Below, piece by piece: positions 16,202-23,767 of a stretch of 64,000 nt of DNA (position 1 is the stretch's first letter; every line of letters starts with the position of its first letter). The DNA is taken from positions 248,001-312,000 of the IMG/VR virus record IMGVR_UViG_3300023174_000038; one strand, 5' to 3'. A program made the position numbers and the translations under genes. The notes below the pieces were generated by a model, which worked only from the letters and a program-made list of their open reading frames with translations, was not told the DNA's origin and made no database searches.

Positions 16202-16942
16202 ATGACAAAACATTGCTTTATTGTGACCAGTGCGGTCAACACAAAATGGGGTATGTATGATAATGAAACTAGGTTCAAACAAACTATTGCTACCTTAGAC
16301 AGCATACATAAATATGCCCCAAATAGTAAAATTATAATTATGGAATGCGCTGCCATTCCATTAACTGAATGGCAAACTCATGTATTGGGTGAGAAATCAA
16401 ATTTGATTGTAGATTGGACTAGTCATCACATGGTTCAACATATTAATGACCAATCAAAAGATGAAAGTATATTAAAAAACTTCACAGAAATCAATTGTTT
16501 CCCTGGAACTATTGAACATTGTTTAGCAACCGATATACTAGATGATGTGGATCGTGTACATAAAATATCAGGTAGATATACATTAAACGAACATTTTAAT
16601 TTAAAACTATACGAAAACAATCAAAAAATTGTTGTTGGTCCAAGACGACCTAGCAGATTACCATTCATATCAGCTTCAGTAGAATATGAATATCCATGTA
16701 GACTGTGGAGTTGGCCTAAGTCTATGTCTAATGATATTGCAACGATGTTCAATGAAATGTTACCATTTCTTGTTAATCATAGAAAAAGAAAATATATAAG
16801 TGAGACCGGAGAAGAACTACAAGCATATATGGATCTTGAACATTTACTATATCATTTCCTTGATCCAAATAAGATTGAATCTGTACCTAAATTGGGTCTT
16901 GATGGAAATCTGTCTTGGACAGGTGAACAAATCAATGATTGA
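16202..16942 (+). CDS. Glycosyltransferase-like hypothetical protein
   Basis: FIVTSAVN...RFKQTIATLDSI, HKISGRY, DLEH motifs; TAAATA box 5 nt upstream. Confidence 0.55.
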   Translation: MTKHCFIVTSAVNTKWGMYDNETRFKQTIATLDSIHKYAPNSKIIIMECAAIPLTEWQTHVLGEKSNLIVDWTSHHMVQHINDQSKDESILKNFTEINCFPGTIEHCLATDILDDVDRVHKISGRYTLNEHFNLKLYENNQKIVVGPRRPSRLPFISASVEYEYPCRLWSWPKSMSNDIATMFNEMLPFLVNHRKRKYISETGEELQAYMDLEHLLYHFLDPNKIESVPKLGLDGNLSWTGEQIND

Positions 16943-17771
16943 TTTTTAACAATTGATCCATAGTATACAAATTACGCATATAGGGTGATACATTAGCTAG
17001 TACTGAACTAGGTAAATCACCCTTTCTTCTTGGACCATATTTTACTTCAAAACTACATTCATTTACTTTTTGAAATAAATCAACAATCTCTTGTACAGTA
17101 TAACCTACTCCGTGACCTAAACATTCAACACTATTGCTAGGCTTTTCAATAGCTTGTATTAATGCATCACATATTTCATTGACATGTACATAATCACGTA
17201 TACATGTACCATCAATAACTGATACATCATAGTCATTACCGTAGATAGTGAACTCACCCGTGTCACGTGCTTTCATTAGATTGTACATTAACCCATCGGG
17301 GTTAGTGGGAGCCACGACGGTACTTCCAATAACATTATAAAATCTAAAGATTGTATATGATGTTGGACGATGGGTAGTACAATATTCTCTAACAACATCT
17401 TCGGCAGCACGTTTACTAATTCCATAAGCACTGGAACAATCTTGTGCGGCACCGGTACTTGCAAAGATAAAGTTTTTAGTCTTTATCTTGTTAATGACAT
17501 TCATTGTACCATTCAAATTGGTAATATAATATTTGATCGGTATCTGTTCACTCTCACCTACACGAACTAATCCCGCTAAATGTATTACTGTATCATATTC
17601 AATATCGCCCGGGATAGCAAATTGTCTATTGATATCACAACGATAAAATTCATTTAAGGGTGCTTGTGGTTCCTCAATATCTAGTCCATGAACTTCATAA
17701 TCATTTTCAAGCATCTTACATAGATGACTACCTATGTATCCCGAGCAACCTGTAATTAAAATCTTTTTCAT
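16932..17771 (-). CDS. NAD-dependent NDP-sugar epimerase/dehydratase (GalE-like)
   Basis: GCSGYIG, HLAG, YGISK, RFYNV, RDYVHV, RRKGD. Confidence 0.9.
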   Translation of the reverse strand: MKKILITGCSGYIGSHLCKMLENDYEVHGLDIEEPQAPLNEFYRCDINRQFAIPGDIEYDTVIHLAGLVRVGESEQIPIKYYITNLNGTMNVINKIKTKNFIFASTGAAQDCSSAYGISKRAAEDVVREYCTTHRPTSYTIFRFYNVIGSTVVAPTNPDGLMYNLMKARDTGEFTIYGNDYDVSVIDGTCIRDYVHVNEICDALIQAIEKPSNSVECLGHGVGYTVQEIVDLFQKVNECSFEVKYGPRRKGDLPSSVLANVSPYMRNLYTMDQLLKINH

Positions 17772-19105
17772 TAAAAACTAAACAGGCTTAATCCTGTTTC
17801 CTCTTCTATTGGTTCAAAACTAGGGTCTTTTGTTAAATATGTATCCTCATCAGTATAGATAACACGGAACTTATGCTTGTTAGTTAATACACTACGTACA
17901 TCATCAATACAAATAATACTACGGTTTAAATCACTAATGAAGTCAACATGTTTAATTGTAGTTTCATTACATATCTTTGCAGTGTTTGTGTTAGATTGTT
18001 TAGGCTTAAAGTTTCTAAAACATTCCATCCATTTATGAAATACATTAGCTTCTTGTTCCTGTGCGTGTTGTAATGCTCCCAAGTTATACCATCTTTCTGC
18101 TTTTTCAAAAATATCATATAACTCTTTTGCTTTACTTGCCATGCCTTTTTTAGTACAAGTATAGAAAAAGCTTTTATTGAAGTTATTAGTCCATCGCTGA
18201 TTCTCTAATACTAATGTAGGCATTTGAATATGTTGTTCATAAAAAGCCATACCATAACTCTCTACTGTGCTAGGATTAAAAGCAATTCTAGCACTTGTAA
18301 TAAAGTCAACTTTCTCTTGACCAATAATACTTACTTTGATTTCGTATGGTACACCAATCTTCTTTAATCTATCTTCAAACTTTTTAGCACCATTAGCACT
18401 AGTCATTACTTTAGCAGGTAATTTTGTTTGTTCAATCAAGTCTAAGAATAGTTCAGGATTCTTACCTTCTTCCCAGCGACCAACAAACAATACACCTTCA
18501 CGTGGTTTATGATGTTCTTCTAATAAACCTTTTTCTGTAATAGGGATAGGTAAGTGATATGAAGATTCATTTAAATGTAGTTGATTGAATTTACTCTGTG
18601 TGCCCACATCAATATTTGTTAAGCTTAATTGGTGACGCATTGCTACATTAGTGTTGAACAAGAAGGGATTCTTAGTGTCTGTAAATATCTGGCTTTCTAA
18701 GTGAGTATATGCAATGATTTGAATCACATCTTCAAGTCCCATAGTACTAGCTACCTGTACAGTTTCATATGTGTTACATATTAATGCATCATATAAATTA
18801 TGTTCTAATGCTTCCACAATAGCTGTACGGAAGTTAGCCATACGTTCATAACAAAAGGTATCTCCATACATAAAGATATTGCTATGGTCAGTATACTTCA
18901 ATGATTCTAATGGAGCTATGATATTTGCAGGAATAGATTTAACAAACTCTGTATCCTGTGGTTCTTTATCTGTAATGATATCAACTTTGATATTATGTTG
19001 GTCCATTAGTTCACAGAAGCTTTTAGCAAATTGTCCTATTCCCCCATGTGGAATGAGAGTTTGATAGCTTACCAAAAAACCAATTCGTTTATCGTATGTT
19101 TTCAT
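17771..19105 (-). CDS. GT-B (GT4-like) glycosyltransferase
   Basis: PHGGIG, LFVGRWEEGKN, PSTVESYGMAFYE. Confidence 0.85.
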   Translation of the reverse strand: MKTYDKRIGFLVSYQTLIPHGGIGQFAKSFCELMDQHNIKVDIITDKEPQDTEFVKSIPANIIAPLESLKYTDHSNIFMYGDTFCYERMANFRTAIVEALEHNLYDALICNTYETVQVASTMGLEDVIQIIAYTHLESQIFTDTKNPFLFNTNVAMRHQLSLTNIDVGTQSKFNQLHLNESSYHLPIPITEKGLLEEHHKPREGVLFVGRWEEGKNPELFLDLIEQTKLPAKVMTSANGAKKFEDRLKKIGVPYEIKVSIIGQEKVDFITSARIAFNPSTVESYGMAFYEQHIQMPTLVLENQRWTNNFNKSFFYTCTKKGMASKAKELYDIFEKAERWYNLGALQHAQEQEANVFHKWMECFRNFKPKQSNTNTAKICNETTIKHVDFISDLNRSIICIDDVRSVLTNKHKFRVIYTDEDTYLTKDPSFEPIEEETGLSLFSF

Positions 19106-19279: not shown

Positions 19280-19510
19280 TTACCTCGTTAGTTTCCATAT
19301 AATATGGGTATTCTTATCGTGCCATCTATGTTCAAAGACAGGATCACCGGGACCAGTAATGATTCTAGTTAATCGGTATCCATACTTTAACCAAATACGA
19401 TTACCGGATATATCACATCTCTGCGGTAACCAAGCAAACTTGTATTCGGTGCCGATCATTCTTTCATAGAAATGATTGTATGGCTGTGTTTGTGGCATTA
19501 AGTTCCCCAT
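19280..19510 (-). CDS. Hypothetical protein
   Basis: FAWLPQRC..SG..IWL motif. Confidence 0.65.
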   Translation of the reverse strand: MGNLMPQTQPYNHFYERMIGTEYKFAWLPQRCDISGNRIWLKYGYRLTRIITGPGDPVFEHRWHDKNTHIIWKLTR

Positions 19511-20346
19511 TCGTTTTTGAAAAGATCACATTGAAGTCTGGCACTATATCTCCACCCTCTTTCCATAGCAAGGTTGGCAACTGTTTTAGTATTAAGTTGA
19601 TATTTGTCATTTGTTCCGCCCACAGGCATTAAATATACAGGACCTCTGAATCCAGCAATACGATATTCTTTAACTGCCTTTTCTGCCTCTAGTACATCAT
19701 CTTCTGTTGCTACTACAAACTTAAGATACACAAAGCCTATACTTTCATATTGACGAATGATACTAGGACAGATTGCTTCACTCCACTTCTCACCGCTGAT
19801 ACTTAATTTAGGACTGACACTAAATGTTAGAGCATTCTTTTCTCTGTTAATCTTCCATTGCTGTAGATAGATTGATAGGTCTTGACTAAGTTCTTGCGTA
19901 CCGTTAGTTTCAAATGTAATCTCTTTCAAACTTTTCATTTTTTCGTTTGAAAGTAATTCAGGATAAGACCTTTGCCAACCAAGTAGAGGCTCCCCACCAG
20001 TGATAACAAGGTGTTCGTCCATCCAGCGATTGTGAGGAAGCATAGCCATAATGTCGTCAACAATATCATCGGTGGGGCGAACAGGACTAAGATGCTTAAA
20101 CCTAGGATCCCATGAAGCATAGCTATCACACCCTGTACTGACCAGCGGTAATTTTTTATAATCATCATAATAGTGAACCCTTGACGCAATATCTTCTACT
20201 TCTTTACTAGTTTGACCTTTAGGCATGCCGAAGCCTGCACATGTAAAGTTACAACCAAATGTTCTTAGGAAAATACTTGGTACACCGATATATCGGCCCT
20301 CTCCTTGTATACTATAGAATAGTTCTGAAATTTTTATGTTACTCAT
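19498..20346 (-). CDS. queE: 7-carboxy-7-deazaguanine synthase (radical SAM)
   Basis: ELFYSIQGEG, RTFGCNFTC...GCDS, ITGGEP, FETNG, SVSPK. Confidence 0.93.
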   Translation of the reverse strand: MSNIKISELFYSIQGEGRYIGVPSIFLRTFGCNFTCAGFGMPKGQTSKEVEDIASRVHYYDDYKKLPLVSTGCDSYASWDPRFKHLSPVRPTDDIVDDIMAMLPHNRWMDEHLVITGGEPLLGWQRSYPELLSNEKMKSLKEITFETNGTQELSQDLSIYLQQWKINREKNALTFSVSPKLSISGEKWSEAICPSIIRQYESIGFVYLKFVVATEDDVLEAEKAVKEYRIAGFRGPVYLMPVGGTNDKYQLNTKTVANLAMERGWRYSARLQCDLFKNEWGT

Positions 20347-20350
20347 ATTT

Positions 20351-20542
20351 TTACCAATTATGTATTGTGTTTGCTATAATGAAAAAACATGTTATCACAT
20401 GTAGCACCACCCAGAAAGTTTTTAGGAACAATGCGATTCTTGCTTCACCCAATGTAAGAATAGGTACATCAGGACGATCATCATCAGTATTACCCATTAG
20501 ATGACCGGTTGCTCTTGCCCAGATTTTTTCTAAACTATTCAT
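20351..20542 (-). CDS. Small membrane protein
   Basis: C-terminal TM helix; WARATG motif. Confidence 0.65.
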   Translation of the reverse strand: MNSLEKIWARATGHLMGNTDDDRPDVPILTLGEARIALFLKTFWVVLHVITCFFIIANTIHNW

Positions 20543-20958
20543 TAAGCTACCTCGTCTTTATTGTTGCTAGGATATTTTGCACTAGTATATCTAATAACTA
20601 ATACGCTTATTGTTACAATAAATGTAGAAACAGCAACCGCTAACATTTCAACAATATTAATTGGCTGATGACTCATTATATCTACCATATGCCGTGTCAG
20701 TGCTGTTATTGCAATGTATAACAAGAACCTGACAGGCATATGATTGGTCTTGAAATAAATGCCTACCATTGCACCCATTTCTAAATAGATAAACATCAAC
20801 AACAAGTCACCAACAGTTGCGTGATGTTTCTGAAACAGTTCAACAAAAGTACATCCGGCTGCCCATACTGTTGCGGCACCGATACCAAACAATGCTAAAC
20901 GATGAAATATATCTACTAAGGTATGTCCTACCTTATCTACCATTTCTGTTTTTAACAT
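20542..20958 (-). CDS. psiE: Phosphate-starvation-inducible PsiE-family membrane protein
   Basis: 4 TM; DLLLMFIYLE...YFKTNHMPVRFLLYIAITALTR. Confidence 0.88.
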   Translation of the reverse strand: MLKTEMVDKVGHTLVDIFHRLALFGIGAATVWAAGCTFVELFQKHHATVGDLLLMFIYLEMGAMVGIYFKTNHMPVRFLLYIAITALTRHMVDIMSHQPINIVEMLAVAVSTFIVTISVLVIRYTSAKYPSNNKDEVA

Positions 20959-21440
20959 TATTCAAACTCCCTATCTTCTCTATGACCACCTCTACCTGCC
21001 ATATTACTATCAGTCTCACGTACCTCTACCCTACAACACCATACACGCTTTGCTTCTTCACTACCACAATTAGGTAAAAAGATTGTGTTAATGTATTCGT
21101 ATAAGAAGTCAGATATTCCCTCACAACCAGTACGCTCTACTTCTGTAATCTTAGCTAGTTTCAAACGACCTAGTTCTAATAGATGTTCACGCATAGGGTC
21201 ATCCTGTGCGACTAATAATGTATGGTCAAACCATTCTTCTAGTTTATCTTTAAGTGGTCGTAATCCCCCAAAGTCAGTTACCCAGTTACGTGCATCTAGT
21301 GTATCAGCTTCAAATTCAAAGTGAAAACTCATAGCATAGCCATGAATTAGATTACAATGACTGTCGGCACGCCATTGACGATATGCGACAGGACCTATTT
21401 GTCTGTATGTTTTTGTTGAAAAGAATTTTTTGTTTGCCAT
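20958..21440 (-). CDS. queD: 6-carboxytetrahydropterin synthase
   Basis: SHCNLIHGY, WVTDFG, FDHT, E..N C-terminal motif; next to queE/folE. Confidence 0.88.
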   Translation of the reverse strand: MANKKFFSTKTYRQIGPVAYRQWRADSHCNLIHGYAMSFHFEFEADTLDARNWVTDFGGLRPLKDKLEEWFDHTLLVAQDDPMREHLLELGRLKLAKITEVERTGCEGISDFLYEYINTIFLPNCGSEEAKRVWCCRVEVRETDSNMAGRGGHREDREFE

Positions 21441-21516
21441 TGTGTTCTCCTATGTTGTATTATAGCATAGGCAGCAGAATTTGTAAAGCGGGAATGATGC
21501 CAAAAGGCCGCTGTTC
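21441..21516 (-). promoter_or_regulatory. queD leader: sigma70 promoter embedded in structured RNA element
   Basis: TTTACA-17-TATAAT; AGCGG/CCGCT stem; GGCA/TGCC potential pseudoknot; CCTATG/CATAGG hairpin over RBS. Confidence 0.55.
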
Positions 21517-21990
21517 TTATTTATTAAGAGTGTTAATGATTTGGGCATCAGCTACCCGTTTACGTAAACTTGAACTACTAAAACTGTGGTCACGACCATT
21601 GAACACAATTTCAATACCTCGTTCCCCACCTTCATATCTTCCAGTAAACTCTTTATCAGCATATTCAACACCCAAAATGCGAACATCTAGGGGTAGAATC
21701 AGTAATAGGTCAATAAGGTCCTGTTCAGTTTGATATACAACAACTTCATCTACATAACGGCAAGCCGCAAGCTGAATCTGTCGCTCTACAATACTTTGAA
21801 TAGGTTTGTTCTTAGTATCAGGACGATCAATGGTTGGATCTGTTTGTAATCCACAAATCAAGTAATCACAGTGGTTCTTTGCCTCACTTAACATAGCAAC
21901 ATGTCCTGCATGTAGCAAATCAAATGTACTAAAGGTAATACCAATCTTTTTACCTTGTGCTTTTAATTCTTTGATATGATTGAAAATCAT
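21517..21990 (-). CDS. Cytidylyltransferase (glycerol-3-phosphate CTase/TagD-like)
   Basis: FDLLHAGH, ER, YVDEV, SSSSLR; start likely MIFNH at 21990. Confidence 0.88.
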   Translation of the reverse strand: MIFNHIKELKAQGKKIGITFSTFDLLHAGHVAMLSEAKNHCDYLICGLQTDPTIDRPDTKNKPIQSIVERQIQLAACRYVDEVVVYQTEQDLIDLLLILPLDVRILGVEYADKEFTGRYEGGERGIEIVFNGRDHSFSSSSLRKRVADAQIINTLNK

Positions 21991-22223
21991 TTTGAAAGAG
22001 TTCTCCACATTTTAACTTGGTCATGCTCTTTTAAGAATTCATCCTCACCCACAAATGTAGGACTATCTGCCATAATCTCATCTAACAACCACTTGATACG
22101 ATGTAAATCTTTTTTGATTTCAAACTGATTGAAACCATCATTGTAATTGCTATGTAATTCTACACCACTCATATAGATTTGATGATGTACACTGTTGTAA
22201 TCCATTTGTTTACGCAAGCCCAT
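21987..22223 (-). CDS. Hypothetical protein
   Basis: Operon-packed ORF. Confidence 0.7.
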   Translation of the reverse strand: MGLRKQMDYNSVHHQIYMSGVELHSNYNDGFNQFEIKKDLHRIKWLLDEIMADSPTFVGEDEFLKEHDQVKMWRTLSK

Positions 22224-22909
22224 TATTTACATCCCTTGTTAGCAATCTGTAAGAACTCTTGTCGTGCCGCTGGATCTGTTTTAAATCCACCACCTAAACG
22301 ACAAGTAACTGTACTAGAGCCTGTATCTTCTACACCACGTGACTTAACGCAATAGTGTTGTGCATCAATCATAACTGCAACATCTTCTGTATCAAGGATG
22401 AACTGTAAGGTGTGAAATATTTGTTCAGTTAATCTTTCCTGTATTTGCGGACGTTTACTGAAATATTCTACGATACGGTTGATCTTACTAAGACCTAAAA
22501 CTTTTTGTTTAGGGACATAAGCTACAGTAGCCAATCCATCAATCACTACACCGTGATGTTCGCAGTTAGATTGAACATTAACATTACGCTCTACAACCAT
22601 TTCGTTGTATTGCATCTTGTTGTCAACTGTTGTGCATTTCGGAAAGTTTTCATCTTTAAGACCGAAATATATTTCATTAATATACATCTTAGCCATTCTA
22701 TTTGGGGTCTCACGAAGGCTATCATCATTTAAATCTACACCCACTGTTTTCCAAATAGTAGTAAATGCATCCTCTAAAATGTCAATTTTCTTTTTATTTT
22801 CTACTGCAAGAGCAGATTCGTTGATGGGAGTTTCTACTCCTACTTTAGTAAGATACTCTCTTACTTTTTTACCCAATATTGGGTCACATTTGGTTTTGTC
22901 AAAACTCAT
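22223..22909 (-). CDS. folE: GTP cyclohydrolase I
   Basis: ETPNR, CEHH, GLSKINR, RPQIQERLT, HYCVKSRG. Confidence 0.95.
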   Translation of the reverse strand: MSFDKTKCDPILGKKVREYLTKVGVETPINESALAVENKKKIDILEDAFTTIWKTVGVDLNDDSLRETPNRMAKMYINEIYFGLKDENFPKCTTVDNKMQYNEMVVERNVNVQSNCEHHGVVIDGLATVAYVPKQKVLGLSKINRIVEYFSKRPQIQERLTEQIFHTLQFILDTEDVAVMIDAQHYCVKSRGVEDTGSSTVTCRLGGGFKTDPAARQEFLQIANKGCK

Positions 22910-22924
22910 ATTGATTCTCCTTAC

Positions 22925-23767
22925 TCAAATTTGTTTATGATTTAAAAATGTAGGTTTAGTTAAATTCCAAACTAAACCATACTGATACTTCTTATCAGGA
23001 TTAATGGAAATGTCATTATCATTTCTATACTTTCCTTTTAACTCTCCTTCAAAAATTATTCTCTTTCCTGAAGGTTTGTATAATCTTCCGTAGCTTATAG
23101 TGTACTCTAATTTTATTAGTTCTTCAATTTTATCGGGTGAAAGAAATTTCTCTTCACCGTTTACTATACACCATTTCTTACCCTTAACTGCGGACTTACC
23201 ATACATACCATTAACTTCTCCATGTCTGGCCATTTGAGTCTTTGATCCAACTCTAAATTTTATTTCGCTAGTATTGATAATATTAGCAATACTAAAAATT
23301 TGGTGGTACAATGGCAATTGATGATACTTTATAATAGAATGCTCACCTAATATGATATTATATATAGTTATAGTATCTTTTCTAGGATTATTGAATGTTT
23401 TCTTTTTGTGTGATGCCACTGCCCTAGACGATGACCAATTGCTAGTTCGTATATTAGTTAAGCCGTATTTTTGCTTCAACTCCAATATCAATTTTAACTC
23501 TATGCATAGAGCCTCATCTTCTGTAAGACCTTCACTGATTTTTACAATCTTAGGGTTCAATCCTAAACTTTGTATTAACCTAATAGTGTTTAACTTATGA
23601 CTATTTTTATGTTTTCTAGTCGGTCTAGCATCTTTTAAGTGGTCAAAAAGTCTACTACCAATGCCCTTACCTATATAAAAAGGCTTCGCTGAAAAAGAAA
23701 AAACACTTGAATTATAACTTCCCTCTTCCATGGGATTTAAATATGCGTATACATAATACTGTGACAT
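22925..23767 (-). CDS. Free-standing GIY-YIG homing endonuclease
   Basis: YYVYAY...PFYIGKG..R...H...E...LTN; NGMYGK NUMOD-like motif; AT-rich insert. Confidence 0.82.
   Translation of the reverse strand: MSQYYVYAYLNPMEEGSYNSSVFSFSAKPFYIGKGIGSRLFDHLKDARPTRKHKNSHKLNTIRLIQSLGLNPKIVKISEGLTEDEALCIELKLILELKQKYGLTNIRTSNWSSSRAVASHKKKTFNNPRKDTITIYNIILGEHSIIKYHQLPLYHQIFSIANIINTSEIKFRVGSKTQMARHGEVNGMYGKSAVKGKKWCIVNGEEKFLSPDKIEELIKLEYTISYGRLYKPSGKRIIFEGELKGKYRNDNDISINPDKKYQYGLVWNLTKPTFLNHKQI

Follow-up and report, generated by a model that had tools for sequence, protein, structure and literature searches.

The preQ1-I riboswitch (Rfam RF00522; types I-III) is a compact H-type pseudoknot that controls translation and is associated with 7-deazaguanine (queuosine precursor) genes, including queD, queE and yhhQ-type transporters. 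The hallmarks of all preQ1-I subtypes include a 5-bp P1, a cytidine at the 3' end of L2 next to P1 and an A-rich L3 (PMC10622847), and all known preQ1 classes are OFF switches. The THF-I and THF-II (folE motif) riboswitches act at the GTP-to-pterin branch, on folE and folate genes, and recognise the guanine-like face of pterins; these classes are OFF switches in bacteria, and THF-II is an elongated hairpin. Translational ON switches are represented by the Vibrio vulnificus add adenine riboswitch, in which a strand needed for the ligand-bound aptamer also forms part of a helix that masks the SD/AUG, so that ligand binding frees the ribosome-binding site. In phages, the T4 gene 32 leader contains an H-type pseudoknot that nucleates cooperative binding of its own protein product and represses translation. 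Riboswitch classes that occur mainly or only in phages are very rare, and none is known to control a DNA-hypermodification pathway.

The window analysed here comprised 64,000 nucleotides, bases 248001-312000 of the 348.7 kb IMG/VR virus record IMGVR_UViG_3300023174_000038, which is rated complete, has about 35% G+C and represents an uncultured jumbo phage. The 76-nt leader of its queD gene was found to contain an H-type pseudoknot followed by a hairpin that covers the AGG of the ribosome-binding site, with a sigma-70-like promoter embedded in the same sequence (Table 1). All of the features listed in the initial annotation, which had proposed either a ligand-sensing switch on read-through transcripts or translational control dependent on promoter choice, were confirmed on the minus (mRNA) strand. 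One refinement was made: P2, which had been described as GGCA paired with UGCC, is longer, since the conserved L2 CA pairs with the conserved UG of UCUGC across a conserved U-C mismatch.

Table 1. Positions in the window of the queD leader features and of neighbouring genes.
Feature	Position	Strand	Description
Upstream ORF	21517-22008	-	Cytidylyl/adenylyltransferase-like
Stop codon of the upstream ORF	21517-21519	-	TAA, 4 nt before P1
Pseudoknot to ribosome-binding site	21447-21512	-	About 65 nt
P1 5' strand	21508-21512	-	AGCGG, pairs with 21487-21491
L1	21502-21507	-	CCUUUU; the first three nt fit the family pattern NCU (CU invariant), the rest varies in length and sequence
P2 5' strand	21495-21501	-	GGCA-U-CA; GGCA at 21501-21498; U21497 faces C21474; A21495 pairs with U21476
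L2	21492-21494	-	UUC; the last C, directly 5' of the P1 3' strand, is invariant in the family
P1 3' strand	21487-21491	-	CCGCU
-35-like hexamer	21482-21487	-	TTTACA; overlaps the last nt of P1 and the start of L3
L3	21477-21486	-	UUACAAAUUC; A-rich, highly conserved, family pattern N-W-A-N-A-N-A-Y-U-C
P2 3' strand	21470-21476	-	UG-C-UGCC; UGCC at 21473-21470
Alternative MFE pairing	21471-21512	-	CAGCGG (P1 5' strand plus one nt) with CUGCUG (end of L3 and start of the P2 3' strand)
Hairpin 5' arm	21466-21471	-	CCUAUG; shares C21471 and C21470 with the P2 3' strand
Hairpin loop	21455-21465	-	CUAUAAUACAA; contains the -10-like TATAAT at 21459-21464
Hairpin 3' arm	21449-21454	-	CAUAGG; covers the AGG of the Shine-Dalgarno sequence
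Shine-Dalgarno sequence	21447-21451	-	AGGAG, 6 nt upstream of the ATG
Start codon	21438-21440	-	ATG
QueD/PTPS-family gene	20958-21440	-	160 aa, C-x3-HGY motif
PsiE-like ORF	20542-20958	-	PsiE-family membrane protein (Pfam 8.7e-21)
63-aa ORF	20351-20542	-	
QueE-like gene	19498-20346	-	Radical-SAM, same transcription direction as queD
folE	22223-22909	-	GTP cyclohydrolase I (NF006824, 300 bits); supplies the QueD substrate
LEM-3-like GIY-YIG nuclease ORF	22925-23767		280 aa, directly upstream of folE
Sugar-nucleotide genes	16932-19105 and 21517-22008		GalE-like epimerase, glycosyltransferase-like ORF and RfaE-domain-II/cytidylyltransferase-like ORF

Taken alone, the sequence of the leader was not above chance. 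The RNAfold z-score was -0.77 for the 83-nt leader and -1.35 for 161 nt. The TTTACA-17-TATAAT promoter was the second-best sigma-70-like match in a 9 kb scan, agreeing at 11 of 12 positions with an upstream TG, but promoter-like sites in the region were no more frequent than in shuffled sequences. The MFE fold of this sequence preferred the alternative pairing shown in Table 1 over P1; this pairing was not conserved in other subgroups and was rejected, although it could act as a local folding trap.

To determine if the leader was conserved, a protein-guided search with QueD was carried out and returned 80 viral loci with QueD proteins 92-100% identical. Their upstream regions shared a conserved block, AGCGG-YCU...UCAYC-CCGCU-WUAYAAAYUCUGC, although the upstream gene differed from locus to locus, and P1 exchanges (ACCGG/CCGGU and AGAGG/CCUCU) were already apparent in this set. 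In total, more than 300 IMG/VR stretches, about 275 distinct versions, were found to carry the element; 225 unique versions were parsed, together with about 50 of the UCG/UCCGC type. Part of the apparent conservation of L3 and the P1 3' strand was imposed by the search patterns that were used; the versions found through protein searches showed the same conserved positions, but were fewer. L1 was not part of any search pattern, and in the 225 versions it began with UCU (105), ACU (64) or CCU (56). Two loci (L566 and L599) were variants in which L1 started AUGG and the P1 loop was longer, while UCG...UCCGC and P1 AGUGG/CCACU were kept, and may form a further subclass.

The comparative data made the structure far more than a chance occurrence. 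P1 was paired in 99.5% of cells in an alignment of 112 sequences, with G-C to C-G (14 sequences) and C-G to A-U exchanges, and other subgroups added AGUGG/CCACU and UGCGG/CCGCA. Since the MAFFT alignment of the whole aptamer misplaced the variable loop and the tail register, it was used only for P1, and P2 was tested on gap-free 37-nt alignments. On 77 sequences the P2 covariation score was 0.519, compared to 0.229±0.019 in shuffles (0 of 500 reached it) and 0.085-0.184 in slid controls. Each of the four core P2 pairs showed three or four Watson-Crick types, examples being GGCA/UGCC, GGCG/CGCC, GGUG/CACC, GGGC/GCCC, GAAC/GUUC, GGAA/UUCC, GUGU/ACAC and UGGCAU/AUGUCA. A nested hairpin in the P1 loop (GCC-UUUU-GGC, GUC-UUCG-GAC) was considered as an alternative to P2, but was rejected as the conserved structure because variants such as GGAA/UUCC and GAAC/GUUC break it while keeping P2.

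The extension of P2 was supported by a loop-loop pair in which L2 UCA changed to UCG when L3 UCUGC changed to UCCGC. A/U occurred in hundreds of versions; with UCCGC the L2 base was G in 51 unique versions and A in 1, and UCG with UCUGC (G/U) occurred nowhere in the collection. On 148 sequences the extended P2 scored 0.581, compared to 0.228±0.012 in shuffles, with the pair in question being A-U in 119, G-C in 28 and other in 1. The resulting architecture consisted of a 5-bp P1, an L1 of NCU plus 1-9 variable nt, a P2 of 4-6 bp, a U-C mismatch and a further 2 bp, an L2 of 1-3 nt ending in a C that was invariant in both the 77 and the 148 aligned sequences, and the A-rich L3.

These results refuted the possibility that there is no RNA function and that the conservation reflects only the promoter boxes or a chance palindrome over the -10, despite the strong promoter match and the non-significant single-sequence fold. 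Compensatory changes occurred in P1, P2 and the sequestering arm, and roughly half of the versions kept the aptamer but lacked both the -10 box and the CCUAUG hairpin. Furthermore, the spacing between the hairpin arms varied from 6 to 11 nt, which does not fit a dimeric operator, and C-to-U changes in the 5' arm kept G-U pairing only on the mRNA strand.

The element was specifically associated with queD. It and the CCTATG...CATAGG repeat each occurred once in the 348.7 kb genome, and a covariance model built from the whole-aptamer alignment gave a single hit of 67 bits there, with the next best at 11 bits. Of 193 versions, 186 were located directly upstream of a QueD/PTPS gene; these proteins fell into several clusters at 50% identity and diverged to about 21% identity. 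In two loci (L074/L076; motif at about L074:2577-2659) a 113-aa ORF with no family assigned was inserted between the element and queD, so the element regulates the inserted gene first. One 524.6 kb contig, IMGVR_UViG_3300027749_002876, held two queD copies (loci L008 and L053; 99% and 98% identical to that of the window) in opposite orientation and about 470 kb apart, each with its own, different version of the leader element; this contig may be a chimeric or concatenated assembly of two related phages. The element is not required for queD expression, since among queD loci retrieved purely through the protein only 12 of 80 and 10 of 80 carried it, always ending 10-25 nt before the start codon, whereas the remainder had queD inside an operon or behind a plain promoter.

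To determine if the element occurred outside uncultured phages, 185,579 bacterial and archaeal species genomes (GTDB) were scanned. Of 42 pattern hits, 40 were chance matches in coding DNA. Only two, on contigs of 5.5 and 6.3 kb (L211 and L232) binned into a Bacteroidetes and a Crocinitomicaceae MAG, carried the real motif; these are probably mis-binned phage fragments, although the sigma-70-type promoters seen in many loci argue against Bacteroidota hosts. BLAST of three motif variants against the cultured phages of INPHARED gave only noise, and the nearest cultured QueD homologues (Acidovorax ACP17, Xanthomonas X1 and BUDD) have queD inside an operon with no leader.

The region following the aptamer was then examined for competing pairings. 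In 97.8% of the 225 versions, at least 4 of the first 8 nt after UCUGC, which comprise the variable 3' part of the P2 3' strand and its continuation, paired with the SD or AUG region in the MFE fold of the platform alone, compared to 47% when those nt were shuffled (mean of 6.1 against 3.4). The arms had unrelated sequences in different subgroups (CCUAUG/CAUAGG, GUCAUC/GAUGGC over the start codon, GUCAUUG/CAAUGGC, GUCUUC/GGAGAC, ACUCC/GGAGU and CCCUC/GAGG), which amounts to covariation at the level of the whole helix. In the window the hairpin was worth -5.7 kcal/mol, but +0.5 without the two C's that it shares with P2, and the probability that the AGG of the Shine-Dalgarno sequence was unpaired rose from 0.01-0.04 to about 0.9 when the P2 strands were engaged. 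The pseudoknot and the RBS-sequestering hairpin are therefore mutually exclusive, and anything that stabilises the pseudoknot is predicted to turn translation ON, a sign of regulation that was not stated in the initial annotation.

The embedded promoter is plausible. TAnnnT was located 16-18 nt after the L3 hexamer in 117 of the 225 versions, essentially all of the hairpin type (110), and the hairpin-type versions mostly abutted the stop codon of an upstream ORF. Versions without the internal -10 often had a sigma-70-like promoter ending 4-12 nt before P1: 49 of 112, compared to 12 in a shifted control, and 36 compared to 3 when a -35 was also required. This complementary pattern suggests that the internal promoter is real, and that in this window the aptamer acts on read-through transcripts from the upstream genes, while short transcripts that lack the aptamer and the 5' arm would escape control; if the internal promoter dominates, the aptamer may matter little in this particular phage. 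Assembled contigs from RNA libraries, belonging to relatives, spanned the aptamer plus queD, but this is weak evidence for transcription. An alternative is that the switch needs no ligand and that pseudoknot and hairpin set a fixed, or temperature- or translation-coupled, level of queD translation on read-through transcripts, with control by promoter choice. The upstream stop codon is positioned such that terminating ribosomes would unfold P1, and the promoter distributions are in keeping with this model. However, it was considered unlikely, since versions with a promoter directly upstream of P1 and no internal promoter keep the full aptamer and the competing arm, so promoter choice cannot be the general function, and about 20 unpaired positions are invariant, more than a passive structural element needs.

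Comparison with preQ1-I showed that the element shares the H-type fold, the 5-bp P1, the L2 cytidine and the pathway context; one subgroup even has the P1 AGAGG/CCUCU. L3 is likewise A-rich and placed to lie in the P1 minor groove, but whether the conserved L1 and L3 nucleotides correspond to those of preQ1-I is unclear, as their spacing differs. The description in the initial annotation of a preQ1-I-like topology without its consensus was accurate. A scan of the whole window against Rfam 15 at the gathering threshold found nothing, including the THF classes, and E-value scans of the leader and of 25 divergent loci gave only noise hits such as PsrR1 and miRNAs. RF00522 did not report the element even at E<=10 in the window, in the 25 relatives or in the whole genome, where its eight sub-threshold hits did not include the leader. 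In addition, P2 has 7 positions with a conserved U-C mismatch and a covarying A:U/G:C pair, compared to 3-4 bp in preQ1-I; an extra invariant UCUGC forms part of P2; and L1 is longer and starts NCU rather than with the conserved U. In preQ1-I the P2 3' strand contains the start of the Shine-Dalgarno sequence, whereas here it was located 19-45 nt upstream of the start codon in all but 2 of the 225 versions and overlapped the anti-RBS arm, which predicts ON where preQ1-I is OFF. We therefore do not assign the element to preQ1-I; it may be a deep relative or a convergent fold, but it is doubtful that it is a highly divergent member that binds preQ1 or preQ0 through the L2 cytidine. The predicted logic is that of the add riboswitch, although the aptamer fold (a pseudoknot rather than a three-way junction), the ligand and the gene context are unrelated.

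It is also possible, although improbable, that the pseudoknot is an operator for a protein, such as QueD itself or another phage or host RNA-binding protein, in a manner resembling the T4 gene 32 leader or ribosomal-protein leaders. Conserved loops around a small pseudoknot are typical of protein-binding leaders, the only gene always associated with the element is queD, and the element is phage-restricted. However, no sequence similarity to the T4 element exists, and nothing here points to a protein partner, although one cannot be excluded. The element occurs in phages of very different size and gene content (contigs of 4-520 kb) with highly divergent QueD proteins, whereas an RNA-protein interface would be expected to co-vary or be lost. 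Binding that stabilises the pseudoknot would activate translation, which is not the usual autoregulatory logic, and the invariant nucleotides cluster at the helix junction, as in small-molecule pockets.

That this is a real, conserved cis-regulatory RNA is as good as certain. In the absence of ligand-binding data, we consider it more likely than not that it is a small-molecule riboswitch controlling queD translation, one that is apparently undescribed, since full-text literature searches, which did not cover subscription journals, found no description of it. The stabiliser is most likely a molecule with a guanine-like face, such as a 7-deazapurine, a pterin such as the QueD substrate dihydroneopterin triphosphate, which lies at the same branch point as the THF riboswitches, or a guanine nucleotide, and would bind at the P1/P2 junction. 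An ON switch on the first committed biosynthetic step is unusual, and simple end-product feedback does not fit. More tentatively, the element may be a new riboswitch class, so far found only in viruses, that switches ON the first committed enzyme of 7-deazaguanine DNA-modification synthesis in response to a metabolite that no known riboswitch senses in this way. If it binds a ligand, it would add either a new aptamer fold or a deep branch of preQ1-I with the regulatory sign inverted, show which metabolite phages monitor when they divert GTP into 7-deazaguanines, a pathway used to evade host restriction, and provide a compact natural ON switch. The embedded promoter would also be an unusual example of two layers of control written in the same 40 nucleotides.

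The QueD-like protein matched PF01242 (3e-15), but its TIGR03367 QueD score of 33.5 bits was below the NCBIfam cut-off of 89, and the C-x3-HGY motif differs from what appears to be the canonical C-x3-HGH. The protein was 47.7% identical to QueD of Pseudomonas phage Iggy, which is reported to carry dPreQ0 (PMC10484667). The genome gave no Pfam TGT/DpdA hit and only a weak QueC-like PP-loop hit (16.5 bits; 206841-207029 of the whole genome) far from the cluster, so the end product of the pathway, and the fate of the 7-carboxy-7-deazaguanine that the phage could make, is uncertain.

Downstream genes varied between loci, but often included a QueE-like gene, which was found after queD in 49 related loci, and sometimes a Vut_1/YhhQ-type transporter. 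A conserved ORF of about 63 aa also followed queD in 61 related loci, and the PsiE-family gene that separates queD from the QueE-like gene is an odd partner for a nucleotide-modification operon. In the window, sugar-nucleotide genes are interleaved with the deazaguanine genes, and relatives also place KdsA-like, GT2 and epimerase genes after queD; this could mean a glycosylated or otherwise decorated modification, or it could be unrelated. Finally, the GIY-YIG nuclease ORF upstream of folE may encode a homing endonuclease.
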